A stretch of 64,000 nt of DNA from Zygnema circumcarinatum SAG 698-1b (GCA_037447605.1 CM074804.1:2108001-2172000), one strand, 5' to 3'. Numbered from the stretch's first letter, positions 4,000 to 64,000 are shown. Notes: a model not told the origin generated them from the letters alone. Numbers and translations: made by a program.

Positions 4000-4503
4000 C
4001 CTTCCTTGAGGAGCCTTTGTGGAGCCAGCCCCCCCTTCCACCCGACCCAGGGGAGCTCAGCTTGAGCCTGAAACCTGGCCCATGGCCCTTTGGGAAGTGG
4101 CAAAAATGTTCGGAAATGGAGGCCTCCGCCGTTCAACTCAATGGCTTTATCGAGCTAGATTCTCTCCTGAGAGTTCTTTCTGCCTATCAGTTGGAAACCG
4201 ATGTCGTCATCTGTCTGCAATGGATTTCCATGGAGGTCGTTCCATCCGAAATGTTTTTGCGATTCTCGTACCGACCTGGCCCGTGTTTTCCGCTTGGTTT
4301 TATAGCAGAAAGCACGGAACGTTTGCTTTTCAAAGGATGACAAGGTTTCTTTAACTTGTGACTTGTAAAAACAAAAATGTTGCATTTCAGCCCAAACGTG
4401 CCGAATTAACAGACATCATTAGGGAGCGGGTAAAGATATTTAGTTTATATGTATTAAATATAGAGTGAAAATCGTCCAGTGCCATGCTTGCATATGCATC
4501 CTT

Positions 4504-6191: not shown

Positions 6192-6277
6192 TTACTGAAG
6201 CAGCGCCACGTGGCGGGAGCCCAGCAGTCGAGGGGGGCGTCTGCTCCAACTTCCCCCTCCTCCCCCAGCTCGGCAGG

Positions 6278-9922: not shown

Positions 9923-10462
9923 CGCATCCTGCTAAAGATTTTAATTCTGGTGGGTACAGCGAAATGGGAGATGGACCTGTAGTCTGGTCTGCATTGCGTG
10001 CTGGCTGACTCTTGGGGAGGACACAGGCCGCTCACAGTCATTCTCTGGCTTGGTAGCAGGAGGGCTCCACTTCGCATTCCTCAGGAGGGGAAGTAGCATG
10101 CCACTTAAAGGCTGCAAATGTTGTGGCTCTCCTCTCCCCCCATCTTTCCCCTGAGCACTTCATTCCTTTCTCTGATAGTGTTCCCACTATAATGCCCCAA
10201 GAGCTCATTCCAAAAAACATGGACTCGTCCCACTAGGCGAACATCTAACCGGGGCAACAGTATAATAATTAAGTGGCAGGTGCCGCAACATGGGCACCCC
10301 ACATTAAGAGCCAGCAATCATTCAAAGTACAAATATCTTATCGTCAGCTGTACACAACCGACCGAATCACCCGAATCGTATGCACAGAGAGGCTGCCATC
10401 TGCCAGGGCACGGCATGGCAGCCTTATTGCTCGCTGTACAGCCCCCAGCCATCCTTTTGATG

Positions 10463-13400
10463 TTATGCCAAGTCCGCAGCAACCATGAATCTCTCCGTCG
10501 CCTGCAGTCCCGTCCCATGTCCCGACACCACACCACGAGTCAGCCCCCTTCTTTGGAGGAAGGCCACCTCCTTGGGGAGACAACTGGCGCAACGAATGAA
10601 CCCCAAGTGCTGCTTGATGCTGCAGCTGTATGAAAACCTCCAAACAAAGTCTAGTGTCCATTTAAGGAGCAGGTGTTGGCGCTCACCGCCTCCCAGGTCA
10701 GCAGACGTTTCTGCTCCGGCCGCAGGGGAACGGGCTCTGCTGCTGCCGCTTGCAGAATGGCCGCAGAAAACGCTTCTGCAGGGACCCCCTTCAAGCAGAC
10801 TGTGAAGGCAACTTCTTGCGAGGCAGCTGCGGACTTTGGGGAAGGCCATGGGAGGCTAAGCAACGCAGAAAGTACGAGAGTTCGAGGACTTTAGGCTGCA
10901 AGGGGCCAAGCCAGCACAACACACACTCTGACATTTGCAGAAGCTCTTTTGCTGCCAAACCTATGCATATCCTCAACTTTGAGCCTGCCATGGGCAAGGG
11001 GACACATGACCCACCTGGCTTGAGGTAATCGTATACGATGCAATTTTCAGGGAAATTGTCCCTGAAAAACTCATTTGATGGATGATCTGCCACCACCTGG
11101 TTGCAGGACCACAATGCGACATGGAGGAAGGGCGTAAGTGACATCTTAACTCAAATGAGTAGCAGCAAAACTCCCGTTCCCGCCAGCGAATAACATGAAC
11201 ACATTTACTACTTTGACCCTCTCAAATATTCATAGAAGGTTCGGCTGGATTTACTTGCTGGCTGCCATACAAAGATCGTATGAACTGTCCTGCTGAGAAA
11301 GGCTTTCCCGTAAAGTAAAGTGCACACATGATATCCACAATGTGCAGTTCTTACTAACACAAGAATCACATGAGTGCAGCTGATCCAACTTGCGATTTGT
11401 TGACACTCAGCTCACATGATCTATCTGAGCAGTTCAGTTCTGAGTTTATCACTTGGTAATTTATATGTAGAAATATCTGAAGGTTTTACACATAAAAATT
11501 TAGTATTAGGTGTTACTAAAGTTGTAGATAAATGAGCCAAGACTCTTTTTGTGCAACGGTGCGATACCTATTTCCTGCTGAGTAAACAAGTAAGAGGGTC
11601 AAGTCCGTACCGCAATCTTGCCCATGGCTATAGCTTCTGCAGTGGTTGTGCAGAGAACATCGCTGACACTCGGGTTGACAAACACCTTGTACCTGAAGTG
11701 CCACGTGAACGAAAGATTGTGCAAGGTTAGATTGACCTTACGCCATTCAGTAGTCAACAATGAAGTCAGCCCATGAATTGGTGGAAAGAAGTTGACAGAG
11801 GGGGAAGAGGAGGGGGATGGGGAGGGGGGCGGGGTAGAAAGAGGGAGCATACTTTCGCAATTCCAAGTCAGCATGGTCCTTTTTTCCATGGAAGCGCAGA
11901 GGCAGCCTGTGGCTGCAGAGAGCAACACCTCTCACCTTTTGTCAGAAAGGATAAAAAGTGCCCGGCAATGCATGTACAAAACCTTTGAGTCGAGGGTCAT
12001 AACTACTACGCTGGAGCATGACGAATGGCTTATTAATGAAACCGCACGTCCGTCTCCATTCAACACAGCAGGCTTCACATTTGATAGTACGTCCGCTTAC
12101 CGTGAAGCAAAATCCATGACTTCCACTTCATCAAACCCGCTTCCATAGATATCCATCCACAAGTCATGGCCCTCGCTACCACTCTTCAGCCCACCCTGTG
12201 AGGTGCCATTGGCTGCTCCATTCTGAGAGGAGCTTGCTGGCCCTGTGCAGGGCTGCACGGAGCCATTATGAGCGGGAAGATGGCTCTGGACGGAAAATCC
12301 GTACTGCTGGCAGTGGACGAGGAGGAGGTCACAGAGTTCACGATATCCTTTTCCCCAAAGCACCTGCGTACAGCAAGTTCATGAAATTGGTCCAAGAAAG
12401 CAGCCTCTGTGGTGACGAAAAAGGCACAGCATCAACTCAAGTAGAACCGTCCTTGCAGTCAGAATAACGATGAATCATACCTTTCCAATAAAATAAAGTC
12501 CTCGGCGAATGTCACCAGACGCCGTCTTTGCCCCATCTTGCGACGAATAGTCCATCAAAAATTGCGGTGATACCTGGATTAACCCATCCGCACAAGTTTA
12601 CTCTATCAGGGAAAGAAGAATTGCTGACACCATCAACTTTTGAGCAAAGACATAAAGCTTACATTCTTCTAGGTACGATGCGTACACTAGGATAGGTGTA
12701 AAATTTCCTACAATAAATATCTGAGAGGAATTCCATTCGACATCAGGGGGGGTGTCTTCAAGCATTATTCCACAACAACGGTTGCAGTGCGGAACATGCC
12801 CTGCCTATCAATGCCAGTATTCATAACGCCATATTCTTTGTGTACATAGTCGGGCTGCTGTACCTGCATGAAAGGTTGCCATAGGCAGAAATATTTATTT
12901 TCTACGGTATCTCGAGAAATTAAGCTCAACGACTCAACACCAAGGCTTCAGAAAGGACTTGCTCTCACCCCATGCACGTTGCATACGATAGAATTCGTAA
13001 AATTCTGCACGGCAGCTGAGAGACGAATCACACGATGACAGTTGGCGCGAGCTACAAGCCAATTGTAGATGAAAACAAACCGCGCCGTGTTAGGCCCGCC
13101 ATGGACAAGGTCCCGTTTTATGTATTCCACGTAATTGGTGTGCGCAATTCCAACAGATTTCTCATACTTGGTACGCCACTTCGGGCCGACCAAGTGGTAC
13201 CTGCAATAAGATACGGACTCTTGTTTAAGGCGTAAAGATTTAGCTTGCAGTAGAAAAGGGCACATAGGTGCAATGCCCCGCCTCCAGCAAAAAGGATGAC
13301 TATAACAGGAAAATGAAAACAGCAAAACAAAACCGCTCGCTGTCTTGCAGCATTTTGTGATGAAAAAATCTTCGGATGGTTTTAAAACAAAAAGGCAATT

Positions 13401-15262
13401 TGTTGGCAGCTAACATCAACCAAAGGGAATAGACGGGCTTCTGACCTGCCCGTAGCACATGACTGCCAAGGACATCTAAATGGCTTCAAACCTGAGAGGG
13501 CAAGCGTACCAGCAAAGGTGCTCGGGCTCCTCAAGAACCGCTATATCAGCTTCTTCATCCAAAATGTGTTCAGTGACATCCGACCCTGCTCCACACACGA
13601 TCACAATATATCTCCACCTAATCAGCTAGCTGTACGGAGCCAGAATGGATGGAATACTTCAACCCCATGCATAAGAAGAGACTACACCACTTTCTCTGCA
13701 ATTCTGTCTGATTGCTAATTGTCACCGCTTGAGCCAACTATACAGCAAAATCGTCACTAAAGGTTTACAGGATAAACAACATTCAATAGGTGGCACTTGG
13801 AACAGGCGCCAAGTCTCTGCAAGAAAATTCAACTGGAACCATTGTTTAGCAGCTTCTTCTGAAGCCGTTCAAGTGTGTCCACCACTGCTTCCCAGGCCCA
13901 CCAGACTTCCATCTATAGCCAGCCTGAAAGACTCACTGTCTAGGGGGAAGATGCTGCCCTTTCGTGGGTCATACCACGAATCGTAGAACAAAATCCGCAT
14001 CTTCGTGGAAATGTTTAGCCTATTGTTCACCCACTGTCGCACATAGGCTGCTTGCTCTTCACGACTCTGGAAGACTGTGCCCGTGTACACGGTGCGTTGC
14101 TGCTCTATAGGGATCCATGGGAACAGAATGGTGACCCGAACACGATGGTAACGCTCCAAGTAAGCGGCTCGTAGGAGAGGGTTGATACTCGTGCCTGCAA
14201 CAGCCGCAATGGCCTACGCCTTGAGAGATGCATCTGCATATAATTCTACAGCGCTGGATGATCAGTAAAGTTCTAGAACCAGGAAAAGTAGAATTACAGC
14301 TAAAACATTGAGATCGTTTATGACGGGTAACAATTTGTACCAGTGAGCCAGGGCAGGCAGGCCGTCGTAACAATTGTAATAATGTAGTCACCCCTAGCTA
14401 TACTCAGTGGCATAGTTGGCACTGCTGCCGGAAGTTCAAAAGTTTTAAGAACAAACGGTCGATGATACTCCAGTGCAGCCAAACGGCGGACAGCCTCCTG
14501 CTGCTTCTTTTGAAATTCGCATTTTCGCAGCTGCTTTTTGGAGAGAGCGAGCAACTGTTGATCGCTCGAGTTGACGGGCCGCCCTGCAGTCTCCCGCTTG
14601 TCCATAAAAAAAATCAGGTTCTGCCAGGTCTAACACTCAGCGCGCATTCCAACTGAAACAACGGTAGGGAACATAAGCTCCCGGAACAGCGACTCACAGC
14701 GAGGCCCGTGCTTGTAGAAGTATTGGTAGCCATTGCTCAGGACTGCATCGAGTGCAGACCCATGCCTACGCTGATGCCATAAAGCAGGAACTTGTTCTGA
14801 AGTCTTCCTTGATATCCGCAGTTGCCACCATTTGAATGGCTTACGACTTCGCACGACATGACACTGCTGAGGTAAAGACTTCCCTATCTCTTGGGGTGCC
14901 GCAGCTGCTGTGGGTGCACTTCCACTAGCAGAAGCAGCTCCAGACTGCAGCCTTAAAGCTGTGCGGATCCTTCTGAGGAACCTTCGAAAGCTGACACGCA
15001 GCGGTTCCCGGTTCCCGTTCTTGCTATTCCTTGCGGAGTGATGGCGCTCGGCTGAAACTTGCGGTTTGCTTTTCCATGCTGACTGCACTCTGCCAATCTG
15101 CCGTTCAGTGGCATAGAGCCAATTGCTGCAAATTGCAGCCAGCTGTTGGAGACCATTTGCACCACCTGCGACAACAATAGCTCTATTGTGTCCTGTTGAG
15201 TCGCTTTTTCTGGCAGTACTGGATGGCCGCGCTCTTGGAGTTGAAGGCTGTTCCCCATCCAT
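10463..15262 (-). CDS. DGD: Digalactosyldiacylglycerol synthase-like glycosyltransferase (DGD1/DGD2 family, divergent); multi-exon
   Basis: TTACLPWLT|[39 protein letters not shown]|[42 protein letters not shown]|VSPQFL..GLYFIGK|[56 protein letters not shown]|[12 protein letters not shown]. Confidence 0.9.
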
Positions 15263-48320: not shown

Positions 48321-48429
48321 TGCAGAATGTCCGATGCAAACTCTATCATTCTATCACATAGACTATCTAGCCACTATCTGTACTATCTTGTCGCTACACC
48401 TCATGGTTGAGTGGACCTAAACTCTGTAG

Positions 48430-49155
48430 GGGAAAAATTGCTGAGCTGAGCATTGCTAAGCTGGAGACTGGACAAGTCATTCAATGCTGCCTGGCGAAGA
48501 ACATGGCGAGAATGAACCCTCAATACCTCTCAAATTTGGCTCACAATATCAATCCCAAGCTAGCATTTCTCAGCCACCTCCAATTCTTTTCCATAAAGGG
48601 TTGTCAGTCGCAAGTGCCATTCGGACCGCTTGCATGCTGGGAAGTCTATACTGTGCTTTTCACTGAGTCGATCAACCTCGGTTCATCTGCCGTACTTGAT
48701 ATTGTGGATTCATCAGTGTAAGCCAGCCAAGGGGTCCATGTAATCTGCTGAGAGAAGTAGAGCCTATTACGGTGTTGTTGATTGGCGGATGCAATGTCTT
48801 CGTGTCAGTCGCTCTCTCGCGGGCATTGCCCGCTGTAAACCAAGAGCCCACTATTCTCCTCGGAGTTGATGTGACCCACCCGTCACCTGGCGAGGATTCA
48901 GTCCCCTCTATGACTGCGGTGAGTGTTCCTCCCATTTCGTGTGTAGTTCCATAAAGAAACAACCCTCCTTCTTTAACAATTCACCTTTGCAGTTAGTTGT
49001 GTGAAGAATGGGTGGTCATCGGCTCATGGGTCAAATCTATCCATGGATCATTTACAGCTGAATTCTGTTGGATGTGCGATGAAGCTCTCACGATGTATCT
49101 GCTGCAGAATATGCATCTGCCTAATAGCGTGATATTCTATCGGCATGGCATCTGA
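48430..49155 (+). pseudogene. AGO: Argonaute MID/PIWI-domain gene fragment with decayed intron boundaries
   Basis: ETGQVIQCCLAKNMARMNPQYLSNLAHNINPK | IGGCNVFVSVALSRALPAVNQEPTILLGVDVTHPSPGEDSVPSMTA | ...EALTMYLLQNMHLPNSVIFYRHGI*. This parallels the AGO pattern SQCC..QYLANV.LKIN.K/GG.N..L..A.SR.IP.V...PTI.FGADVTHP.PGEDS.PSIAA/..P..IIFYRDG. The donor after NPK reads CT instead of GT, and there are in-frame stops. Confidence 0.85.
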
Positions 49156-49617
49156 GTGACCCCGCCTAATTACGTATGAATTGCTTTATGAAATGTTCAG
49201 ATATATGTGTAGTCAAGACTGTCGAAGTCATGGCCCCACAAGGGTATCTTTTTGATCTTGATATTTTGGATACCGATGAACGATGGGTAACACAATCAAT
49301 TTATAACAGAGCTTTCAGAAGAAAAAAACAACTCTGGATTCAGCACATTCCCCTAAAACCTCTAATTGGTGAGTGAAGCCGCATGTGCGCAATTCACAAC
49401 AGCAAAGGTGAAAAGAAAACGTCAAAAAAGAAGAAGTTCAAAAAAGTTAAAAAACATGAAAACGCAACCTGAGAGAGAGGAGAGAGAGAGAGAGAGCGAG
49501 AGCGAGAGTAAGAAGAGGGGGGGAAGACAGAGAAATGGGAGTGATTCATCTTCATTTTTTTCCATTCTTGAAGGCGAATGGCAAGAACAACTCAATTCTA
49601 TTGCTATCCAACCCCCA

Positions 49618-52600
49618 TCAGCTGTCCGCGCTGCCCAGGCTCGCGTAGGAGTCCCCGATCGCCGCCACATTGCCGGATCTCGAAAACACGATCTGCATCG
49701 CTTGGCGGGGTACAGAAAAGAAATTGAGATAGACCCCACTTTTGAGCCGAAGAGCAATCAACTTTCTAGATTTTTTTTTTTGGCAAGAGTTGGCAAAGCC
49801 AAAATTGGATAGTGTCTCAGAATACTTTTGTTGCCTCTCCTTTCATGAAACCATAGACTGCACGTGTTGAGCCAAGAAAGGGCCAGCAAGGCTTGATCGG
49901 AGGTACCTGAAGGTCTCCCAAAGTACACGACTTGAAGCCGGCGGCGCAATAAACAAAGTAATAATCCCACATGCGGACAAACTTGTCGCTGAAGCCCAAC
50001 TGCATGATGGTTCTGCAAGCAGAGGAACGAGTGCTTTCATGCTTAGTTTCTCCTTCATTATCAACAAAGGCGGAGCGCCCCTCAGCCTGCACCCTCGCCT
50101 CGCCCTACACCCCTCCCTGCTATGCGGGACGTGACAAACGTGCACGGGTGTGAAGTACTGATTGGTTTATAGAGACGAGACGTAAAGGTTTGAGTTTGAC
50201 GATTTTTCACCCTTTATTCCTGAGGAAGTTGTCTCTCCAGCGGAGGAGCGTGGTGGCATAGTGCGGCCCGATGTTCTCGACATGCTCCACACTACAAAGA
50301 AGGGGGGGGGGGGGGGGGGGNNNNNNNNNNGGGGGGGGGGGGGGGGGGGGGGGGCAGGTGTCAGACAATGGGCCAGAACGAGCGGAGATGCCTAACGCAG
50401 GGCAGGGAAGGGAAGGGGTGTCCTTCACCTGAAAAAGGAGGAGGAGGCCATGGCTGTGACAAGTGCTGTGAAGGCAGGCACGCAGCACCCAGGAAAGATG
50501 TACTCCTTGATGAAGTCTGAACTACGGCGATACTCCTCGTATCTCTCTTCAGGAGTCGTTATGACCTGCTCCACACTCAACGACAAAATGCCAAAAAGAG
50601 TCAGTCTGCCACTGTTATATCTGCGTCCGATTAGCCAAACCGATATTCACTGAATGCCGCGAACTTACAGACGGGAAATAGCACAAAAAACGACAAAACA
50701 CAACCTGCACAACTAGAAGGCCGTCCAACGTGAGTAGCCGATCACAGTGGTGGAAGAAATCTCCAAGGTACTCGTGCCCTACAGCCTCCAGCATTTCACT
50801 GTGCAGCCCAACACGAAGAACACAGTGTGAAGATCCGCCAACTGGAAATGCATCCACTTGAAATGGAGAGACAGCGACACAGCCCACTCACCACGACACA
50901 ATGCGGTCGTACGACCCGAGCCCGGGCAGCTGCCGGTAGTCGCACAACTTGAACTCAATGCGATCCTGCGACCTCACCCAGCCAGTGAAAGCGTGAGACG
51001 CGTTCCACTTTTTTTTTTTTCAATTTTTTTTTTTTCCGTTTACATTCAAATGCAGTGTTTCATTATTGCGCGTATATTTTGCGGACCCGAGGTCTGTCTG
51101 GTGGAGGAAAGGGGAGGGAGGGAGGGAGGGCGGGAGGGAGGGAGGGANNNNNNNNNNGGGAGGGAGGGTGGGAGGGAGAGAGGGTGGGAGAGAGGGAGGG
51201 TGGGAGGGAGGGAGGGTGGGAGGGAGGGAGCGCACCTGCAGGCCGGCGGCTTGCACTCGCTGCTGCGCGAGGCGGAGCTGCTGCTCGGAGAGGGTGATGC
51301 CCGTGTAGCGGCACCCCGTGCGGCGGACGAGCTCCATGGCCATGCTGCCCCACCCGAACCCTATCTCCAGCACGTGGTGGTGGGCCTGCACGCGGGCCTT
51401 TGTGATCATCCGCCGCAGCTTCCGCAGCTGCGCCTCTTCGAGGTCCTCTTGCGGTTCCTGCACCCACTACGAAGGAACATCAGCAATGGAAAAAAACATG
51501 GAGCGTAGGCGGCTTGGCAGCTCAATTTAAGGTTCCCAAAACTATGGCGAAGGGTGTATGCCATATGCAGAAGTCAGACGCATATGCTTCTGTCTACCTC
51601 ATACAGGTCCGTTTGAATTCCAATACAACGTCAGATATTGCTTCAACCTGACCTTGAAGATGGCGCAGGAGTATGTCATGGATCTGTCCAGAAATGTTGC
51701 GAACATGTCATTGCTCTGCAAACCACACAACTTCCTCTTCCCCTTCAACAATAGCAAAAAAAGAGGAGGGGGCATGAGGAGAGAGCTACAGAGTGGAAAA
51801 TCAGTGGGGAAAACGTTTCTATCCCATAGGCTTTACAAAAGTTAATTTTGCTTGGTGCACCTGGGGGGCACCATTTCGACTGCAACTCAGTAGAGGTGCA
51901 GAGTAGCAGAATGCGGATTGAAGCTCACGAGGTCGTAGTGATCGGAGATGTTGCGGCGCGCCTTTGTGAGCGTGTTCCCGCGCAGGAGGTGGCGGAAGTA
52001 CAGCGCCGCCGACCCCAGCACCGCCGTCACCATGGCGGGCCGCCACCAGCCCCTGCAGCCCGCGGGGAGAGCCCCTCAGAACTGGGGCCAAACAGCATGG
52101 AACCTCGCCTCTGTTCACACATTCTATTCGATCGATACACGCAGAGGAAAAGCGGGCTTGTGGGTCTTACTTGGCATTGTTTGGAATCATGCCCGGACGC
52201 CTTGTGCGATCTCTGTTAGCAATCAGCATCTGAGATCATAAAAAAAAATAAAAACACGCTTTCGATCAGTCGTAAGGCAGTCACAAATGTTTGCAGCCTA
52301 TTTGGGGTTTCAGTCTTCACCATCAGAGGCACACAAAGGCTCTTCCCACATTCTTTGGCACACAAAGAAAGAAACCCCCTTTCATAGCGTTTACATCTAG
52401 GTGTGGATAGGCAATGCCCATGGAACAGAAAAAACTATGTCCTATACCCTGCGTATACGTATGAAATGGCTGGAAATCTCATCGATGCGAATGAGAATGA
52501 ACGAGCACCCACAAGAAGGAAAGCCAAAAGGCCGTCACTTCCGCCCACGCAGGTGAAGTCCCCATCCACATACGCGTCTGCTAAGCCTAAGTCTGCGCGG

Positions 52601-55600
52601 GTCGCCACCTGGCTTCAACACAACCCCAAGGCTGGTCATTTCCCCCGAAAATTCTTGCCTGCTCAAATGCAATCGGCACTTCCATTTGCGTAGAAATAGT
52701 AAAAAACTTTGACAATTCTCCTCACTTGGCATAAAAGTGAAGATAACAACAAAAAGGGGATGAAAAGACGAAGTGCGGCTGAAGGAGCAGCACCTTCCAG
52801 TAGAAAGCCGGGTTCGTCACATTAAGGCAACATTGTGCAGGCGCTGTAAGGGCGCTCTTTTCATCGCTACTTGACTTCCCAATGTCGACGACGGCCCCCC
52901 CCGTTTCCTGCACTCTGCAGCCGCCCCCCATGGCCTCCCCCCCCTAGCCACCATAGTGAGCCCTTTGCTGCGCTGCGGGGCGCTGGGCGGGCGGGCGGGC
53001 GGGCGGGTCCTGAAAGGCGGTGGGAGTGGGACCTGAGCGAGCCGGAGCGGACGAAATCGCGCAGGAATGCGAGCACAGCGCAGCGCGCCGCGTATTGCGG
53101 CCACGTGGCGGCCACGTGGCGCTCGTTGGGTAGCGGCACGTAGGGCTCCCCGAGGAGGCTCCGCGCGGCCGCAACGCCCGCCTGCGCCCGCCCGCCGGCC
53201 CGCCCCGCGAGGGATGACGTCACGTCAGGCGCGCTCGCCCCCGCGAAGGGCAGAGGGCAGGGCAGGGCAGGAGGAAGGGGCTCCAAAAGTGACACGCAAG
53301 GAGAGAGCTGCGACTAAACGAGTGGGCCCACCTTGAACCCGTCCTCGTGGAAGCCATATCCTGCACATGGCCACGGAATGATGTCAGCATCGGCACGGCA
53401 CAGCGCAGCACCTGGAGTAGTGAGGGGTGCTAGCGCAGTTCCATGGGACCTGAGACACATTTGTATGTGGATGCCATCAGCGGTGTGCCAAGACCCAACA
53501 GAGGTGCCGCTAGTGAAGTGGATAGCTGCTGGACGATGCAGACCGGTAGCCCCAAAGCAAATGACGACGAGTATTGGAGGCGAGCATTGGCAGAGAGGCA
53601 GACAAGGGAGACCGCGCACGCAGAGATGTGCCCTTAGCCGAGCTTCCGACCTTGGTACGCTCCGCAGAACCAGAGCCCCCGCTTCCCCTGGATGGCGGGC
53701 AGCTCCCTCGTGGCCACTGCGGCGGCGGGGGACGGAATTGGGTGCGCGGCGGTCCAGCGGCGCACAGTCTTCCGCGGGGGCTCCGCGGGATTGAGCGTCA
53801 CCAGCACCGGGTCGCCCGTGGAGTCCAGGTTCTGCCCCGCCCCGCCCCCAGCGCCTATGAAATGGAGGAAAGGCAAGGTGCACGCCTTCCTTGACGTTGA
53901 CACGAGCATTTCTATTAAGTGGCTTGGTGGCACTAACAGGTACGGCCCCTGTGTTTGTCTCTGTCATTCCAGCTTGCGACCAGGCAAGCGATGCTGGACG
54001 ATCAAGATAGGTTGGAGGAATGGGACTAGTGGGGGCAAGAGTAGTAGGAAGAGTAGAAAGGACACGTAGAGTGGGTATTTAAGTTATAAATACGAGGATG
54101 GGAGTCAGAGTGGGGGTCGTGCTAGTAATTGTAGGAGTAATGAGTGGGAGAGGCTGGACGAGGATGATTTCAGCAGCAACAGCTGCCGAGTCAACATTGT
54201 CAAGATGATCCTCCCTGTAAGTAAGCCTGGGTAGATGTGCACCTGCAGAGTATTCAGCCAATAGGTCAAACACAGCTTCCCATCCGGAGAGCTCTGGAAG
54301 TTCCATGCGCTCCACGCCGCTTTCCGTTTGGGCATGTAGCTTGCGTCCCGATGAAGATAAATGTCACTGAGCACCCCCATCGGAAGAAATGTAAGGTGGC
54401 CAATCCCTTCTCAAGGGCCTCACATACATAACACTACTTCGTTGGCAGCCCAGAATAAGCATGACCTCAAACCTGACGATCCTCTCGCTTATCGCCAGGG
54501 CAGTGGCAGACTGCACGGTGAACATTCCAGCCGGTAACTGAACGACGAGCCAAGTTACTCGCCGAGGAAAAAAACACCTCAGGCGACTAACAGTTGGATA
54601 AAGGGCATACCTAGCATAACAGGCTGCTCTAATGAACACGTCGATGCTGTTATCATTCAAGAACAACCCCCAATGTCTGACGGAGAAAGCCCGGACGCTA
54701 ACCTTGAGGCGTACAGGAAGGCCCCGAGGACGCGGCGCTCCCCCGCGGTGGCCTGCTCCCCGAGCAGCGCGAGCGCGTCCGGCGCGTGCGCCGCCACCAC
54801 GCAGTGAGTGAAGGAGGCGGTGCGGCCACACGTGTCCTCCACCTCCACGCCGCCTGGGAGGGCGCACCGCTGGGGCACGTCACATGGCGCAGCACAAAGG
54901 GGGGGAGGGGAGGGGAGGGAGTAGGGAGGAGGGAGGCGGGAGGGGGGAANNNNNNNNNNAGGGGAGAGGGGAGGGGAGAGGGGGGAGGAGGGAGGAGGGA
55001 GGGAGGGAGGGCAAGACTGCCTCACCTTCGCTAGTCGTGCGGATACTGCTCACGCCGCAATCGGTGCACACTTCGCATCCTCTAGCCTCCAGCTCTGCTA
55101 CCACCTGCTCGCAATACCACACTCACAGCGAACTGGTTATGAAGCCTCACACGTACACAAGGTTATTCTCCAACTTGGACGACACTTGACTATCTCTGTA
55201 GAGGCCATGATCTCCTTTGAAGAGAATATGCGAATCTCATACATCCATCGTACAGGTGCTGGAAACATCATACCGAACTATCGACTATCTAGAGAAAGGA
55301 AGGACTTCACGGTTATGGCAGAAAAGATCAGCTGTCCAATAACGAATCTCGACCATTAACCCCAATTGAGAATCTTGTCAGCTCATCAGAAGGACAACAT
55401 TGCAGCCATCCTAACAGGACCCTTCTTTACAAGTTGAGGTTCGGGGAAGAAGATATGACGATGACCTGCTGAGGTGAGTGCGAACCTTCAACTTGAAATC
55501 TATCTGGGCCTAACTCAGACTATTGAACGAGAGTCCATAATCAGCATTATCGTTAACAATGACCACAATTAAATAAAAAATGAATAACTTGCCATAAAAA

Positions 55601-57264
55601 AATGGTGACTTTGTTTTGTTTTTTTGAACCACAAGCGCGGTAAACTATTAGTAATTGACTATGGTTGCGTATGCCTGTTGCCTTTTTGACAACTGTGTCA
55701 GACGCGAAATATGTGAACCAGTTACCCGCAAGGAAACACGAGTGCGTGCAGTAAGCTGCGAGTCATGTTTCACCTTTTTCACGTACGTCTCAGAGCGGCC
55801 CTTAACGGTGAGCCATTGGGGCCGGCCCAAGATCTGCCCCCGCGCCCCCCCCCCCCTCTCCCTTTCCCCCCGTCAGTCCGTCCGCACGGAGGCCGGCCCT
55901 CCGGCCGCAGGCGGGCAGGGAGGGAGGGAGGGAGGGAGGGAGACAGGGAGGGAGCGAGGGAGGGAGGGGGCGCCCACCTGCAGCATGTGGTGGTTGCGCA
56001 GAAAGCTCAGCACCGAGGCCGCTGAGAAGCTCAAAACTCCCTCGGGCCCGCACGACCAGATGGAGGCGCACACGGGCAGCTGCGCTCCCACCTCTCCATT
56101 AGCATACATTCCAACTGCATTTATACAGAACCATAGGTACCATATCCTGGCAAAAGTTTGAAGGTTTTGGACCTAACTCAGTCTGCTTCCCTTCGCCCAG
56201 GTTCCTTCTCAAGTAATCCTCAGCCATATGAAGTTATTGAGAAACAAAGACTCACAAGGTAGCAATCTCGAAACTTAGCCGAATAACGCTGCTCTGCTAG
56301 GAAGTGCCCGAGGGTCTCATGAGGGTCCACTGTCTGATCGCCGGCCTCAATTTTGGCTAAGTACCTGAAACCGCACAATGGGCCCCCTGCTCGTAACACA
56401 AGCTCTCTCTCTCTCTCTCTCTCTCACGCCCTCTCACTGCCGCTCCGTCCATCTGATTGTTACCCATCGGCTTGGCTATCCATCCTCCTGTTGTTCTTGT
56501 TGGCTTCGCGGTCGAGCTCTTTCATAGCAAAATTACCAATCCCGTTGTTTTTGCTAAAAAATGCCACTTTGGCCTTCTCCACACACGTAACTTCTGAAAA
56601 ATCAAGAACAGAACCACACTGCATTCGTCGTCGCAACGTTGATGGCTCCCAGCGAGCAGGGAAGCACACCCAAGCAGCAGCAGGAGAGAGGGGCGAGGGC
56701 GGGGCCTGACTGACTGCAGCACGTGGCCGTGGAAGAGGTACATCTCCCGCAGCATGGCGAGGAAGGCGGGGTTGGCCGCGTTGCGGCGCTGCGCGAAGAG
56801 GCCGCGCAGCCCGTTGCTGCCCCACTCGCAGGAGGGCGCGCTCACGGAGAAGGACATGTCGGAGGGCTCCACCTCCACGCCCACCTCCTCGAAAAACGCG
56901 ATCAGGTTCGGGTACGTCACCTGCCCCCCCCTCCCGCCCGCCCGCTCAGACCGCCTCGCCATGCCCTTCCTTCCAAACAATGCTCTGAGGCGGCCGCGCG
57001 TCCGAGCCGAGCTGCGGAGGGCGGCTGCAGGCGGGCTGCGGCCCTTCAGGGCTTTGAGGGGTTGGAGAGGGCGCGCACCCTGTTGAAGACCATGAAGCCG
57101 ACGTCCACGGGCAGATCCGCCTCCGCGCGCACTGTCTGCGCGTGCCCGCCCACGTGGCCATCGCGCTCGTACAGCACCACCTGCAATCCCGCACGTGCGA
57201 GGGTCCAGGCAGCCGCCAGCCCCGCCACGCCCGAGCCCACCACCGCCACTTTCCTCCCCGCCAT
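49618..57264 (-). CDS. Cyclopropane-fatty-acyl-phospholipid synthase with fused N-terminal FAD-dependent oxidoreductase (amine-oxidase-like) domain; about 20 exons
   Basis: N-domain: KVAVVGSGVAGLAAA (GxGxxG), VGGHAQT, VDVGFMVFNR|VTYPNL, SDMSFSVS, SIWSC, QWLTVKGRS, AWSAWNF, LTYWLN, LVTLNP, QGKRGLWFCGAYQ|GYGFHEDGFK. C-domain: NPAFYWK|VATRADLGLADAYVDGDF, ARRNISDHYDL|SNDMF..FLDRSMTYSCA, HVLEIGFGWG, EMLEAVGHEY, DFIKEYIFPG, IGPHYATTLLRWR, FVRMWDYYFVYCAAGF. Confidence 0.93.
55150..55440 (+). mobile_element. Probable decayed Ty3/gypsy pol remnant (RNase H C-terminal region) in an intron of the CFA synthase gene, antisense to it
   Basis: One frame reads QLGRHLTISVEAMISFEENMRISYIHRTGAGNIIPNYRLSR, resembling the gypsy L.RRQARW.EF..E....I.YR.G..N..AD.LSR motif. 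In-frame stops follow. Confidence 0.45.
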
Positions 57265-57762
57265 GGCGCCCCCTCCTTCTTCCTCCGCCTTCTCCCTCCC
57301 TCCCTCCCTTCCTCTCACTCTCCCTCCCTTCCGCCTCGAGCCACGTCTGCAACAGCTCCTCTACTGTACGCTGCCAATCACCGTACGAGCCAAATGTACG
57401 GATTCAGTGGAGATTGCAGATCGAGTCGGCGCAGGTTGGGGCCGTACCGTGTGTTCGTACAAAGTATCAACGTAGCGCCAGTCACACGCTACCACGCGGC
57501 GGCTGCTCCGTTGAGACACGTTGGCCGATCGGCCGCGCGCGTACGGCCCGCGGCGCGCGTTGGAGCGTAGCGGCGGATATTTGCAGCGGCGGGCGGCGGG
57601 GGGAGCTGCGGCGCGCGCGGGGGGGCGCTGCCTGGAACGAGCGCGCCGGGGGGGGACGTCACCCCGCGCCCTGCTGCCACTGCGGGAGGGAGGGAGGGAG
57701 CGGGAGAAGGGAGGGAGAGGGAGAGGGAGAGGGAGGAGGGGGCGAGGGAGGGAAGGGGCGCC

Positions 57763-60227
57763 ATGTTCCGCGAGATCTGCCTGCTGCGGGCGGAGGATCT
57801 GAGCGTGGAGCTGAGCCCGGGCGCCAGCCGCCTGCTCGCGCGGCTGCCCCACCCCGCAGCCGCAGCGGCAGCGCGCGGAGCCGCCACTCCCCCGGGAGAG
57901 GCTGAGGCGCTCTGGCCCGCCCAGCACCACGAATGCCACGCGGCGCCTGCTGCGGAGCACACGTGGCGTAAGGAGGGAGGCCGCACTGGCTCGCGGTGGA
58001 AGACAGCGGCTAGCGCAGCGCAGCTGCTGACGGACGTCGGCTTCCTTGTGCGTCGCCGCGTCCTCTTCCCTCCGCCTCTGACTCCATGGCGTGGGCGGCG
58101 AAGCGAGCGGAGGGTGGGAGGGTTTGGGAGCCCCCGGGGTTGGCTGAGCGAGGCGGGCGGGCCGGCCTGCAGGTGTACGCGAGCGTGCACGTGGCGGCGG
58201 CGGTGGCGGTGGCGCGGTGGGCGAGTTGGCGGCTGGTGGGACTCTGCGGCGCGCTCTATGGACTGCGCATGTTCGGAATCACCGGCGGCTTCCACCGCCT
58301 GCTCTCCCACAGGTGGTGCTCTGGGTCAGACAAAGAACGGCCTTCTGCCTGTCGAGGAAGAATTAGGGCGTGAGAAACGGGCTCATGACTGAGAGATTTG
58401 AGGAGGTGCAGATCGTACAAGACGTCGCGGGCGGGGCAGCTGGTCATGGCCACTCTCGGGTGCCTCGCCTTCCAGAAGGGCCCCCTCTGGTGGGCGTCGC
58501 ACCACCGCCACCATCACCGGTGCTCCCCCTCCCCCTCCTCCTCCACTGTCTGCTCGGCCGCTATGGTGCGCTGGGAGAGAGCTGTGAAACGCCTCAGTTC
58601 CCCTGCGAGACGCTGTTGGTTCGATACCGCTGAATGAGGTGAGGGGTGGGAGCGAGCAGGACGGCAGACACGGAGGCGGATGCGCACAGCCCCTTGCTTT
58701 GGGGCTTCTGGTGGTCGCACATGGGCTGGTGAGGAACATTACTGTTGCTGCCTTCTGTCTGCCCTTCGTCGCAGGAGAGTAAATACTGTGTGGCCTCGCG
58801 CTAACAGAGGAGGAGGAGGATGGAGCGAGCAGGTTTTTGTGCACCCAAGAGCATTCGGAAGTATTGTGGGCGGCGGTGCCTGACCTCGTTCGGTTTCCCG
58901 AGTTGCAATGGCTGGAGAGGTACTGCGATCCGCCCTGGAAGTGAAATCACGCACTGCCCTACGGAAAAGTTTGAAACTTGCACGCATGCGTTGCAAGAAG
59001 AGTACGATAGAAGCGGGTGCGTGCGGGTCCAGGTACCACTACGTGCCTCCATTGGCGGTGGGCGCACTGCTGCTGGCGGTGACGGGGCTACCGGGCGCTG
59101 GTTGGGGCTTCGCCGTCAGCACCGTGCTTTGCTGGCATGCCACGTGGGTGCAGCTGCTCTGCCTCATCCCCTCTTCAATCACATTTAGCCACAGACTTTT
59201 GGTATCAATCTCACCATAGGTCAATGCGTTCCAATTAATTGGCAGTCGGACTGCAGTAGTTTTAATAAAGTTCAGGAGTGAGTGGTCTGTCTGGGAGGCA
59301 AGCCTCGGTGTTTGCAGCGCGAGTGACGGGACAGAGCGGGTGGGCGCAGATACTGCATCAACTCGGTGGCGCATCTGGTCGGGTCGCGGCGGTTCCGCTG
59401 CGAGTTCAACACACACTGCGGGGCGCGCAACAACTGGTGGCTCGCCCTCGCCACGCTGGGGGAGGGATGGCACAACAACCACCATGTCTGCCTCCCTCTC
59501 CCCCTCCCCCTCCCCCTCCCCCTCTCCCTCCTCCTCCTGCTGCTGCTGCTGCTGCTGCACGGGGGCTTGTCAAAGAGCGGAACGCTGCAAACGGCGACGA
59601 ACGGAATCTTGTTTGGCAGTGCCCAATGGCGTCGCTTGCAGCACTCAGCAGGAGCAAGCTTTGGGCTTCTCATCTCACTGACCTGTGCCTCGTCTGGATG
59701 TGCAGTGCTATATGCGATCTGCTCGCCATGGTTTCTATGCGCATGAGGTGCGCCACTCTCTGTCACTGATTGGCATGTCGACGTTTTTTTAGGGTTTGCT
59801 GTTGTGCTTCGCAAGACCGTGCACCGAGCGCCCGTGCGGCCTTTGCTGCATCTCTCGGGCTGCCTGCTGACGGCGGGCGGAGAGGGAGCATGCAGATCGA
59901 CGTGACGTGGTACATTCTGCTCGCGCTCGAGAAGCTCGGCCTCGTGTGGGACCTCGAGCGCCCTCCTCTGCCAGAGGTGACCCCTCCCCGCGGGCAGACA
60001 GTGAGAGAGAGAGATAGAGAGACTGACTGACTGACTGGCTGACTGACTGATTGACTGATGACTGACAGACAGACGGACAGGCGCTTGCCAGAGAGATAAC
60101 TCATTCGCGTTTCTGCTGTTGTGGGCGTTGGCAGCTGGAGAAGCACCGATACGATGACACCCATTTACAATGTCGCTGTGCTCGGGTCTCACAGGATCTC
60201 AACATCACATCGTCTGCTGCATCGTAG
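57763..60227 (+). CDS. Membrane-bound fatty acid desaturase, delta-9 / acyl-CoA-desaturase-like (bacterial-style motif set); about 10 exons
   Basis: Spliced product: [19 protein letters not shown]|[36 protein letters not shown]|[23 protein letters not shown]|[18 protein letters not shown]|[22 protein letters not shown]|[35 protein letters not shown]|[14 protein letters not shown]|[20 protein letters not shown]. All three His boxes are intact and all junctions are phase-compatible GT/AG. Confidence 0.92.
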
Positions 60228-61109
60228 AACTCAAAGCTGCCTATATATAGACCTACGACCTATTTATTAGGTTTCCCTTCAACTTATAGTTACAGTTTAG
60301 TAGCCGGTTACGTTCTTACCACATAATAGTTCTCATCAATGAACCGTCCGTCCGTCACCGTTCCGTCTGGTGAACTTGACGGAAATCTCATGCTCCTACA
60401 AAGGCAAAGCCTGCATAAGTGTGGGCGAGAGGGTGTTCCCTGTACTTGTATGAATGTTTGTTCACTGAAAATCAGGAAGGAAGTTCTTTCCAATGGGCCG
60501 TCGTCATTCGGTAACATCGCAACCGGCACTGCTTCAGCTGCCTTAGGCCTCCCCCTGCGGAGGGAAGGCGGAGATGCGGGCAGGGCAGCGGGAGGAGGTT
60601 GGAGGCGAGCAGGGCCCGGCGGAAAGCAACAAAGCTCCACCCTCCATTCTTTACATGGTCGCATAGTACGGCAGTGGCACGCTGTAAGCTGTATAGGGTA
60701 GTTCAAAATGGTACTCTTTCCAGAAGAACAAAAAAACAGAGAAAGACTACGAGTGTTACTGGGCCCTTCTTGTAAGCAAAATTGGACCCTGACCTCTACT
60801 AGTTCTACCTAGTGCAAGCGAGGAGTAATTGGCCGCACAGGCGCGGTTATACCTATGGCGGACATTTCTACGAAAGTGCGGGAGAGAAACCTGACCGTAG
60901 CTCAAGCATCCTTCTCTCGACTTTTGTAAACCTAAAGTTTTCCTGACAAAACTGGTCATTTGTGACTATCTGTCATGGCCACAAGAAGCACAATTGAAAC
61001 TCGCACAAGTGTACATAACTATGTGCACTAAGGTCTCCTTCCAACTTCTCGAGGAGGTCTCCATGACGTCCCGACGTTGTCTCGAGTCTCCTTGTCTCGA
61101 ATCATGGAG

Positions 61110-62209: not shown

Positions 62210-62349
62210 GGCCGCCGGTCTCTCGAAATAAGCAGCGAATGGCGCACGCCTTCGTGTAGCGACCCGCCAATTTTTCTTCGAACTCGGGATGCCGCAGCGA
62301 TAGAGAGCGCAGGTGGCGAAGGAGGAGAAAGGAAGGAGCGCGGAGCGCC

Positions 62350-64000
62350 ATGGCTGCCGCGCGTGTCCTGCGGCTGCTCCTGGCGGCCATGGCTCTGGCC
62401 CTGGCTCCCGTTCCTGTCTCGCTGCAGCGCTCAGCCGCTGCGGGGGAGCTCTCGGCCCTGTGTGAGAGCCTCGTGGCGGCAAGGGGCTACCACTGCGAGG
62501 ACCGACGGGTGGGCTTGCTCGTCTGCCTGTGTCCCTCTGCTCAATTTACAACTTGCAATCTGCCCCTTCTCCTGTCTTCCTCCCCTGCTCCTCTTCTCGC
62601 TCCGCCTCTTGGTTTCAACTCCTCTGTCCTTTCTCTGCTTCGTCCTTTTGCCACTTTCGCTGTTCCCCCTTTTCCTCTTGCCTTTTAGAGCTCTCGGGCA
62701 GCGTGGCCGCCACAGGCCCTCTCATAGCCATCGTTTGTGCAGACGACCACTGCCGACGGCTACGTCCTCGCCTTGCAGCGCATATCTTCCTCGTCTGCGG
62801 AGCTGCACGGCGGAGAGCTTCGCCCCCCTGTGCTGCTTCTGCACGGCCTAATGATGGTATCAGAATGCTTATTTTCTGCAATAGAATCTGCGGGTGTCAA
62901 CAGTGGCATTTACTGTAATTATAAATAAATTTGCACAGCATTAGCTATAGCATCAAGAGCAATGTTCTCTAACAACAAAAACATTTATTATAGAAAGAAC
63001 AAAACAAGAAAAAATACAGAATTGGGTAAACTTGCTGTGGACTTGCAGCAATGCACAATTTGTGTTTATAGAAAAAAATCTCCTACTTGCACAAGACATA
63101 CTAGAATTCCGCACTAGGTGCAGCAGCAAAACTTCCTCTTAGAGCAAAACAAGCTCAGCCTTCCACACCGTCCCTTCCCACCACCACCTCCTGTTCTCGG
63201 CTTTGTGCCGGATACGCAAACTACTCTGCCTTTGTTTCGGAACAGTTGTGACCTTTCAGACTACGGACTCCTAGTGCAGTATGTGAACCCATTTTGGGAA
63301 ATAAGCAATGGGGCCGAGGGGAGATCAGGACGGGCCAGGGCGCAGAGACGTGGCTCCTGAACTCCCCCGCCCAGGCCCTTGCGCTCGTGCTCGCCGATGC
63401 GCCCTTCGATGTGTGGCTGGGCAATACTCGGGGCAGCCGTTGGAGTCACGGGCACATCACCCTGCCGCGTTCCGGCAAGGTATGTGCTCCTGCGTCTCAG
63501 CTATGTGCTGAGGGAGAAGACGCGTTGACTGCCGGGGAACCGCTGACAGTGCCCCCTTCCTGGGAACAGAAATACTGGGATTGGACTTGGGACGAGATTG
63601 CGAAATACGATCTTCCAGCCCTGCTGCTGCATGTCTCTGAAGCGAGCAAGCAGTCTCGAGTACTTTTTGTTGGCCACTCTCAGGTCCGTTCTCACCTTTG
63701 CCCCTAGAGGTGTTGCCATGTTGCATTAATGGTTGAGAGCTTGACGGGGCTATCTGCACCAGTCGTAAGGCGTGTTTTGCTTCACTATTACGAATGGTTT
63801 GATTTAAATTAAATGAATTAAATTTCAGTTCCTCCTACTGTACTGTGGCCTGTGAGCCAGCCTGCCAACGGTCAACGCGGTAGTGACTGGTGTGCAGGGC
63901 ACCATGGTAGCTCTGGCAGGAGCTATACAGCAGCCGTTAGTTGCTCACAGTGTGGCAGCTGCTGTCCTTCTCGCCCCCATAGCACACCTCGCACATGTCC
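62350..64000 (+). CDS. Secreted/vacuolar acid triacylglycerol lipase (LIP1-like, alpha/beta hydrolase); multi-exon, runs off the 3' end of the window
   Basis: Signal peptide, LCESLVAARGYHCED, TADGYVLALQRI, PPVLLLHGLMM|GAETW, LADAPFDVWLGNTRG, YWDWTWDEIAKYDLPA, FVGHSQ|GT (GxSxG), AAVLLAPIAHL. Confidence 0.9.

Follow-up and report, generated by a model that had tools for sequence, protein, structure and literature searches.

Why should a gene for a membrane fatty-acid desaturase and a gene for an FAD oxidase fused to a cyclopropane-synthase-like methyltransferase lie head to head in an intron-rich streptophyte alga, and do their products work together? The question is raised by a stretch of 64,000 nucleotides from Zygnema circumcarinatum SAG 698-1b (GCA_037447605.1 CM074804.1:2108001-2172000), hereafter the window, from whose first letter all positions are counted. 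An initial annotation had read the pair as a possible co-regulated pathway for methyl-branched, furan or cyclopropane/cyclopropene fatty acids, an interpretation that as a whole is partly supported by the analysis given below.

Two intact genes on either side of a GC-rich spacer

The minus-strand gene, of the UfaD-UfaM fusion type, occupies positions 49618..57264, from its start ATG at 57264-57262 to its TGA stop at 49620-49618, and its 23 exons, separated by 22 introns that are all GT-AG, form a single ORF of 875 aa with no N in the coding sequence. Exons 1-10 (53332..57264) encode an N-terminal FAD/NAD(P)-binding amine-oxidase-like (UfaD-like) domain (aa 1-409), for which exon 1 gave Pfam matches to NAD_binding_8 (1e-15) and Amino_oxidase (2e-13), and which carries the GxGxxG-type dinucleotide-binding motif GSGVAG (57220..57237, translation checked). 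Exons 11-23 (49618..53181) encode a linker and a CMAS (UfaM/Cfa-like) SAM methyltransferase domain (aa 410-875); here exon 17 matched CMAS (1e-18), and the SAM-binding motif VLEIGFGWGS (51344..51373, translation checked) aligns with the bacterial LEIG[ST]GWG. When compared with the proteins of three bacterial operons (L036, L067 and L073), aa 5-418 are 35-37% identical to the UfaD homologues, and the UfaM part is 34-39% identical to the UfaM homologues; across the bacterial operon CMAS proteins its identity is 34-42%. An 871-aa gene of Klebsormidium, in which both Pfam families (Amino_oxidase and CMAS) are present, gave a collinear tblastn match. Judged from its sequence, the gene has the plant "CPA-FAS" or UFAM1-UFAD1 architecture, i.e. 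an FAD oxidase of ~400 aa followed by CMAS, ~870 aa in total, as in Arabidopsis UFAM1-UFAD1 (AT3G23510, 'AtUFAMD1') and the Sterculia and cotton CPS proteins (PMC10940516, PMC13247531, PMC3132707).

Since the fusion gene spans three assembly gaps, the position of the gaps was checked first; all three turned out to be intronic, and the intactness claimed by the initial annotation thus holds. The exons flanking them are in frame and align residue for residue with the Klebsormidium orthologue. The gap at 54950..54959 lies inside intron 6 (55025-54854), whose flanks join in frame as TTSEG|GVEVED and match TTSG..GVVITD of Klebsormidium. That at 51148..51157 lies inside intron 17 (51235-50966), whose flanks AAGLQ|DRIEFKLCDYRQL correspond to AAGLQAKISFMLCDYRAL, there one continuous exon, and that at 50321..50330 inside intron 20 (50428-50292), where AMASSSFF|SVEHVENIG faces AMTTHSNL|SVEGVENIG with zero residues missing. 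The placement of these three introns comes from the reading frame and the Klebsormidium alignment, the RNA-confirmed introns of the fusion gene being its first four. The gap at 54950..54959 is ringed by CCCTCC-type repeats.

The plus-strand gene (57763..60227) runs from an ATG at 57763 to a TAG stop at 60225-60227, and its 10 exons, separated by nine GT..CAG introns, encode 383 aa that are 69% identical to a transcript-derived orthologue (P0003), which starts and ends at the same points. The three His boxes of the family, HxxxxH, HxxHH and HxxHH, are found in this order as HRLLSH (58293..58310), HRHHH (58503..58517) and HNNHH (59471..59485), and NSVAH (59360..59374) supplies the Asn and the ninth His of an SCD1-type di-metal site: in an alignment of P0003 to human SCD1 (4ZYO; E = 3e-22) it falls on NSAAH. 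PF00487 is carried by the orthologues P0003, P0004 and P0026, through which the family is assigned, as single exons of the window gene are too short for a Pfam match of their own. The predicted protein is thus an SCD-type (delta-9-like) integral-membrane fatty-acid desaturase of the PF00487 family with all metal ligands. It is not a member of the NCBIfam DesA_fam equivalog, for which the scores were 60-78 bits where 400 are required. It belongs to the same fold family as mammalian SCD1 (4ZYO, 4YMK) and keeps every ligand of the di-metal site, nine His and one Asn; the algal clade differs in having a conserved N-terminal MFRE[IL]xFL motif, a 4-aa insertion that contains Cys, a Cys that immediately follows His box 3, and a CRC motif at the C-terminus. 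The lineage-specific insertion region, with two conserved Cys (59387..59422), is found in all streptophyte-alga members and in Porphyridium and is missing from the bacterial relatives; the C-terminal CRC motif (LQCRCA, 60165..60182) is kept from Mesostigma to this genome.

Between the two ATGs lies a spacer of 498 bp (57265..57762; 69% GC), which ends in a CCCTCC tract on the left and a GGGAGG tract on the right. Gene identities, divergent layout and spacer are therefore as first annotated. Both genes are transcribed and spliced: two studies, with four runs in all, provided spliced RNA contigs that confirm 12 introns, eight of nine in the desaturase and the first four in the fusion gene, and RNA depth is 3-11 in the spacer versus 35-120 in the flanking exons. 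In each of the four runs the contig depths of fusion and desaturase were similar, at 3/4.4, 38-47/35-50, 94-110/110 and 82/39-120, respectively; being assembler word depths from four runs only, they are a crude measure of co-expression. We infer that the two genes are co-regulated through the shared spacer.

Conservation of the pair and origin of the desaturase

The initial annotation knew of no such pair elsewhere in the plant lineage. What is new here is that the same head-to-head pair occurs outside this genome, namely in the distant Klebsormidium nitens (L002; fusion 2547-8857 on the minus strand, desaturase 10001-13624 on the plus strand) and on a Klebsormidium-like 52-kb metagenome contig (L085). 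Because the same divergent pair recurs in K. nitens, the arrangement is more than chance. In two Closterium genomes and in Porphyridium, on the other hand, no fusion gene was found within 10 kb of the desaturase, nor on the desaturase flanks of a compact green alga, of which ~6 kb on each side were examined. The pair is thus conserved in Klebsormidiophyceae and broken in Closterium; distant lineages, though not all, keep the two genes side by side in this orientation.

Similar groupings are found in bacteria, as the initial annotation had stated. Among 160 sampled bacterial desaturase loci, 33 are linked to UfaD, DUF1365 or UfaM homologues (17 of the 77 loci whose flanks reach 4 kb or more in both directions), most commonly in the order desaturase, UfaD, DUF1365, UfaM on one strand, and these linked loci are spread over at least two separate desaturase clades. 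In Stenotrophomonas maltophilia, whose smlt2375-2367 region, like locus L067 of Porticoccus sp. W117, places an SCD-type desaturase beside a UfaD homologue and CMAS as in the alga, smlt2374 (acyl-CoA desaturase), smlt2373 (FAD oxidoreductase) and smlt2371 (CFA synthase) are co-transcribed in one sigma-Ec/ChrR-controlled stress operon, which is up 200-700 fold in a chrR mutant (PMC11832516). The bacterial operons consist of separate co-directional cistrons and also hold DUF1365, DUF2878, DUF1295 and a second CMAS, whereas in the alga UfaD and UfaM form one polypeptide, the desaturase is divergent, the genes are intron-rich and DUF1365 is not adjacent. As the pair lies head to head in both this alga and Klebsormidium, and the same enzyme types share a bacterial stress operon, the fusion and the desaturase probably act in one lipid pathway.

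The linkage might instead reflect a promoter region shared merely by descent, since divergent genes that are so closely spaced are not easily parted, and the desaturase might be a delta-9 enzyme of general membrane fluidity with no pathway in common with the fusion. In keeping with such a history, Closterium broke the pair and kept the desaturase, and ~80% of the sampled bacterial desaturase loci are unlinked. Land plants also appear, from the sequence searches, to keep the fusion and to be without this desaturase, so that the fusion can work without it. Yet no other flanking gene is common to the window and the Klebsormidium loci, which makes neutral retention from Klebsormidiophyceae to a zygnematophyte-like genome unlikely, and several bacterial lineages have independently reached the same pairing, transcribed as one operon (PMC11832516). 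We therefore consider mere linkage by descent a rather unlikely account, although the strongest of the alternatives.

The desaturase clade comprises streptophyte algae, a red alga and a compact green alga. No embryophyte protein was among the best 120 hits of either the full-length or the C-terminal-region desaturase search, in which scores fall from 179 bits (Mesostigma) to at most 154 (metagenomic and bacterial proteins). A grouping with the ordinary ADS/FAD5 enzymes of land plants, which together with absence of the pair from relatives would have spoken against the initial annotation, is accordingly not supported, as judged from the search hits and not from a tree.

Could the pair be the relic of a bacterial ufa operon (desaturase-ufaD-ufaO-ufaM) that entered the early green lineage whole, after which ufaD and ufaM were fused and the desaturase was inverted? 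Its gene content equals the first genes of the bacterial operon, and in a quick tree a constraint joining the eukaryotes to the largest operon-linked bacterial clade gave a higher likelihood. In the careful ML tree, by contrast, the eukaryotic desaturases stand apart from both operon-linked clades, with intervening nodes of 99/89 and 93/83, and forcing them together costs 18.9 lnL (AU p = 0.059, a borderline value that is no formal rejection). Moreover, the clade includes the red alga and the compact green alga, in which the desaturase is unlinked. The careful tree, which covers the desaturase, offers no support for a joint operon transfer (AU p = 0.06), and we regard such a relic as improbable. 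This reading concerns the origin of the pair, and is compatible with a functional one.

A possible pathway for acyl-chain modification

The reading that we prefer, with a probability of roughly one half, is that the pair is a conserved divergent two-gene module for modifying the acyl chains of membrane or lipid-droplet lipids, in which the desaturase feeds the fusion. The SCD-type di-iron desaturase would place a cis double bond in a saturated acyl chain; the methyltransferase domain of the fusion, which needs a cis-monoene, would then transfer to it a carbon from SAM, so that either a methyl-branched trans-olefin or a cyclopropane results; and the FAD domain, a homologue of bacterial UfaD, would desaturate the methylated chain, after which closure to a furan ring could be left to an unlinked DUF1365 (UfaO-like) protein. 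Through the short spacer common to both genes, substrate supply and substrate use would be switched on together. In this scheme we infer that the fusion uses what the desaturase makes, that the two genes are regulated together, which signal induces them and what the final product is.

The order of steps has a parallel in Rhodobacter/Cereibacter, where the homologous methylase, UfaM, acts before the FAD desaturase, UfaD, and the two together with UfaO turn a cis-monoene on phospholipid into a furan fatty acid (PMC7380195). Unlike in the alga, ufaM is unlinked there and no SCD-type desaturase takes part, and the substrate, cis-vaccenate, is abundant in the membrane phospholipids (PMC7380195). 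Neither the 64-kb window nor the Klebsormidium locus contains a DUF1365 gene. In Arabidopsis, AT3G23510 (the fusion) is found together with AT1G30130 (a DUF1365 protein) on lipid droplets (PMC10940516). Cyclopropane makers among plants are confined to the Sterculia/GhCPS1/GhCPS2 clade; GhCPS3 gave no cyclopropane product on expression, and Arabidopsis, whose homologues cluster with GhCPS3, has been found to contain no cyclopropane fatty acids (PMC3132707).

A cyclopropene route, in which the fusion would make dihydrosterculate-type cyclopropane chains and the desaturase would add the ring double bond, was also entertained by the initial annotation and gained no specific support: which plant enzyme desaturates dihydrosterculate has yet to be established (PMC3132707), and the lineage-specific Cys and 4-aa insertion lie near the metal-ligand motifs (NSVAH and His box 3) in the sequence, but the desaturase clade was not found in land plants, cyclopropene-making Malvales included, cyclopropenes potently inhibit SCD-type desaturases (PMC3132707), the literature searched gave no record of such lipids from streptophyte algae, and the bacterial operons pair the same enzymes with DUF1365, so that we hold it to be very improbable. 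That DUF1365 accompanies the same pairing in bacterial operons indicates a furan route instead.

As for the signal that would switch on the proposed module, photo-oxidative or singlet-oxygen stress is probably the trigger, by analogy with bacteria and Chlamydomonas. In the latter, CFA1, CFA2 and the DUF1365 gene Cre06.g269300, green-lineage homologues of the ufa genes, are co-induced by singlet oxygen in a SAK1-dependent manner (PMC4067076). Neither a desaturase of the clade studied here nor physical linkage is reported for this regulon (PMC4067076), which gives a concrete prediction for the pair.

More tentatively, and in our view less likely than not, ancestral streptophytes may already have made furan or methyl-branched fatty acids by a pathway responsive to photo-oxidative stress, of which this pair would be the core. 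A dedicated desaturase, of SCD type and rich in cysteines, would in this case supply the UfaD-UfaM fusion with its monoene substrate as required. Bacteria would then have reached the sigma-E/ChrR operon solution independently, and land plants would later have lost the desaturase and rewired the substrate supply. If this were true, the synthesis of furan fatty acids in eukaryotes would begin with an enzyme hitherto overlooked, namely this desaturase.

Structure and expression of the divergent genes

The region is intron-rich eukaryotic DNA. Reading of all six frames, and then modelling of splice sites with relatives as a guide, recovered two complete genes. The UfaD-UfaM fusion gene lies on the minus strand (ATG 57264, TGA 49618) and has 23 exons, 22 canonical GT-AG introns and a product of 875 aa. 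Pfam detects NAD_binding_8 (1e-15) and Amino_oxidase (2e-13) in exon 1 and CMAS (1e-18) in exon 17, and the SAM motif VLEIGFGWGS is present, an architecture that is also that of the plant cyclopropane fatty acid synthases. All three runs of N in the model fall within introns, those at 55025-54854, 51235-50966 and 50428-50292 (minus strand). Judged by alignment with the Klebsormidium orthologue, the exons flanking each gap appear to be in frame with no residues missing, and at the 51148 gap a single uninterrupted Klebsormidium exon spans the corresponding junction. CCCTCC/GGGAGG tracts surround all three gaps (around 50321, 51148 and 54950), and are probably the cause of these assembly failures. 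A profile built from exon pieces of the window and Klebsormidium on bacterial CMAS scaffolds, with which eukaryotic fusion proteins were sought, matched bacterial CFA synthases only.

The desaturase gene lies on the plus strand (ATG 57763, TAG 60227) and comprises 10 exons, nine GT..CAG introns and 383 codons for amino acids. Its product carries the His boxes HRLLSH, HRHHH and HNNHH; among solved structures SCD1 is the nearest, and two further ligands of the SCD1 metal site, an Asn and a ninth His, are supplied by the motif NSVAH. The ATG and the first His box are in different frames, with the intron 58048-58172 between them. The start codon proposed in the initial annotation is borne out by P0003, a 367-aa transcript-derived orthologue from a related organism, which is 69% identical to the window protein and agrees with it in the unusual N-terminus (MFREIC.L) and in the C-terminal tail. 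No Pfam match was obtained with single desaturase exons, because they are too short.

Several features set the clade of this desaturase apart: an insertion that bears cysteines, a Cys following His box 3, the CRC motif at the C-terminus and the MFRE motif at the N-terminus. Five Cys residues conserved in the clade and absent from the bacterial relatives are located in the RFRCEFxxHC insertion (59387-59422), at the HNNHH-C junction (59486/59706) and in the CRC (60165-60182), all on the plus strand; by homology to SCD1 they are probably on the cytosolic face, and they may form a metal or redox site. The N-terminal motif MFRE[IL]xFL..E (57763-57820, plus strand) is common to P0003, Chara braunii, a Chara-like transcriptome and Chlorokybus, and since this N-terminus is acidic and conserved, it is unlike a plastid transit peptide.

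The two start codons are separated by a spacer of 498 bp (57265-57762) with a GC content of 69%. The ends of the spacer mirror each other, with CCCTCC/GGGAGG tracts at 57265-57330 and 57690-57762, so that each leader is GA-rich when read on the sense strand of its gene. ACGT-core motifs were also seen, and their count in the spacer matches the chance expectation for 500 bp. RNA contigs from four public runs of the same organism, belonging to two studies, were placed on 54400-60300. Spliced joints were found exactly at the modelled coordinates for eight of the nine desaturase introns and for the first four fusion introns, and the RNA depth was 3-11 in the spacer versus 35-120 in exons. The depths of spliced contigs for the fusion and the desaturase were 3 and 4.4, 38-47 and 35-50, 94-110 and 110, and 82 and 39-120 in the four runs, respectively; these similar values, four points of a crude measure, are compatible with co-expression.

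Distribution of the desaturase and conservation of the pair

The whole library was searched with 58086-58310, a query that includes 27 non-coding residues (intron end 58172), and 23 matches were returned, the needed orthologues among them; the other short matches, P0006-P0021, are bacterial fragments and not algal exons. The nearest relatives of the desaturase are found only in streptophyte algae, i.e. Spirogloea, two Closterium species, a Chara-like transcriptome, Chara braunii, Klebsormidium, Chlorokybus and Mesostigma. The search scores drop clearly after Mesostigma, and the next relatives are bacterial acyl-CoA desaturases (~50% identity) and Porphyridium; no land plant occurs among the best 120 matches of either desaturase search. 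In the trees, the window desaturase stands beside P0003 and Closterium, a position that makes a zygnematophycean genome probable, and the streptophyte desaturases form one clade (100/99), whose branching order is compatible with vertical descent. A same-clade desaturase also occurs at 5697-7066 of L087, an intron-poor, green-algal metagenome contig, where its neighbours are a PPR protein, PGM1 and BPL/BioY; it groups beside Chlorokybus in the tree, and thus extends the clade past the named streptophyte algae. For the Chara braunii orthologue (L086:10001-80925), the annotation gives a gene of 71 kb with a truncated product of 292 aa, and tblastn finds exons in it only up to residue 230 of the window desaturase.

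The head-to-head arrangement recurs in Klebsormidium nitens, where the annotation places an 871-aa Amino_oxidase and CMAS protein at 2547-8857 (minus) and the desaturase at 10001-13624 (plus) of locus L002, and tblastn shows this pair to be fully collinear with both window proteins. A 52-kb JGI metagenome contig contains the same pair; its exons are 80-88% identical to those of K. nitens, so it represents a second member of the Klebsormidiophyceae, not an independent deep lineage. The other neighbours are a Piwi gene and an acid-lipase gene in the window, and ubiquitin-L40 and an unnamed gene in Klebsormidium, which indicates that the pair alone was kept. The Piwi-domain (Argonaute-like) gene (~48400-49300, plus strand), seen as one exon with a weak Pfam match (5e-4), stops just short of the 3' end of the fusion. 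The desaturase is followed directly by an acid-lipase-type alpha/beta hydrolase gene (~62300-64000, plus strand; Pfam Abhydro_lipase, 4e-11), which is the third lipid gene in a row and has no synteny in Klebsormidium. The pair was not found within 10 kb of the desaturase in two Closterium genomes or in Porphyridium, and is absent from ~6 kb on each side of the desaturase in L087. The 10 kb upstream of the Chara braunii gene contain no fusion exon, an observation of little weight in view of the 71 kb that the gene spans. The adjacency is therefore conserved in part, and the pair of the window and Klebsormidium is a rare example, for the plant lineage, of a metabolic gene pair with deep conservation.

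Bacterial operons and the origin of the linkage

Bacterial desaturase loci were sampled in two sets of 80, the first taken from species genomes and the second from metagenomes, and were scored for homologues of UfaD, of UfaM or of the DUF1365 protein UfaO in the flanks. Such homologues were present at 33 of the 160 loci, and at 17 of the 77 loci flanked by at least 4 kb on each side. The commonest layout, on one strand, is desaturase, UfaD, DUF1365 and UfaM, after which DUF2878, DUF1295 and a second CMAS often come. The reading frames of Porticoccus sp. W117 overlap at the stop codons, and each family is confirmed by Pfam. The operon tail in this strain (L067:14364-16866), with equivalents in L089, L150, L156 and L166, consists of DUF2878, the steroid-reductase-like DUF1295 and a second, shorter CMAS, which may act on the same lipid as the ufa enzymes. 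In Stenotrophomonas maltophilia the same nine-gene cluster is reported to be a single operon under the RpoE-ChrR pair, and in a chrR mutant every gene of the cluster, the acyl-CoA desaturase included, is up 165-700 fold (PMC11832516). This operon and the 33 linked loci confirm the assertion of the initial annotation that bacteria encode an acyl-CoA-desaturase-like gene together with an FAD-dependent oxidoreductase, DUF1365 and a Cfa-like methyltransferase. The association of such desaturases with Ufa enzymes is recurrent, and the linked desaturases fall mainly into two separate clades of the tree.

In a careful maximum likelihood tree, the eukaryote clade attaches apart from both operon-linked clades, with intervening nodes supported at 99/89 and 93/83. 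Constraining the eukaryotes to group with the larger linked clade cost 18.9 log-likelihood units (AU p = 0.059), and in a quick tree the topology constrained to unite eukaryotes with a linked clade scored better; the clear separation of eukaryotes from operon-linked bacteria suggested by the FastTree and quick trees is softened by both results. Joint inheritance from a bacterial operon is without support in the careful tree and is disfavoured; it is simpler to suppose that the linkage arose separately in algae and in bacteria.

A putative pathway for furan or methyl-branched fatty acids

Furan fatty acids occur in plants; to our knowledge, their biosynthesis in eukaryotes is unsolved, and since 2002 the role of the oxidase domain in the plant "cyclopropane synthases" has been unclear. 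A CMAS-type methyltransferase requires an acyl chain that carries a cis double bond and is already esterified in lipid. In Rhodobacter, UfaM methylates phospholipid cis-vaccenate, the FAD enzyme UfaD then desaturates the product, and DUF1365 (UfaO) inserts the oxygen that closes the furan ring (PMC7380195). Arabidopsis AT3G23510 has been read as a UfaD-UfaM fusion (UFAM1/UFAD1), whose product shares its location on lipid droplets with the DUF1365 protein UFAO1 (PMC10940516, PMC13247531). In cotton the oxidase domain is dispensable for cyclopropanation, and GhCPS3 gives no cyclopropanes on expression; the Arabidopsis homologues cluster with GhCPS3, and no cyclopropanes were found in Arabidopsis tissues, so that this plant clade is not linked to cyclopropanes (PMC3132707). 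In Chlamydomonas, CFA1, CFA2 and one DUF1365 gene are induced by singlet oxygen in a SAK1-dependent manner (PMC4067076).

We propose that the desaturase, switched on with the adjoining fusion, would guarantee a cis-monoene substrate where and when it is needed, a supply that would help bacteria with monoene-poor membranes and, in the alga, the compartment hosting the fusion (the lipid droplet in Arabidopsis). The UfaM domain of the fusion would methylate the chain, the UfaD domain would then desaturate it, and an unlinked DUF1365 protein would complete the furan ring. The bacterial sigma-E/ChrR control and the SAK1-dependent induction in Chlamydomonas predict photo-oxidative stress as the trigger. 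For this mechanism, from substrate supply to trigger, we estimate a probability of about one half. The main alternative, that the divergent pair was retained neutrally with no link in a pathway, seems to us rather unlikely. That the desaturase and the fusion form a cyclopropene route is highly improbable, since no member of the desaturase clade was found in cyclopropene-producing plants and SCD-type enzymes are inhibited by these compounds.

Each of the two genes belongs to a known family, and our search of the literature found no report of a linkage between the desaturase and the fusion. What is new is that the divergent pair is deeply conserved in streptophyte algae, that it is recognised as the mirror image of a stress operon in bacteria, and that a clade of streptophyte-alga desaturases, apparently lost in land plants, is defined. 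The pair points to a third enzyme beside the fusion and DUF1365, a new clade of SCD-type desaturase, and together with the bacterial operon it predicts the inducing condition, singlet oxygen or high light. As a genomic lead the locus is well supported, and with it the proposed eukaryotic pathway for furan or methyl-branched fatty acids becomes directly testable.
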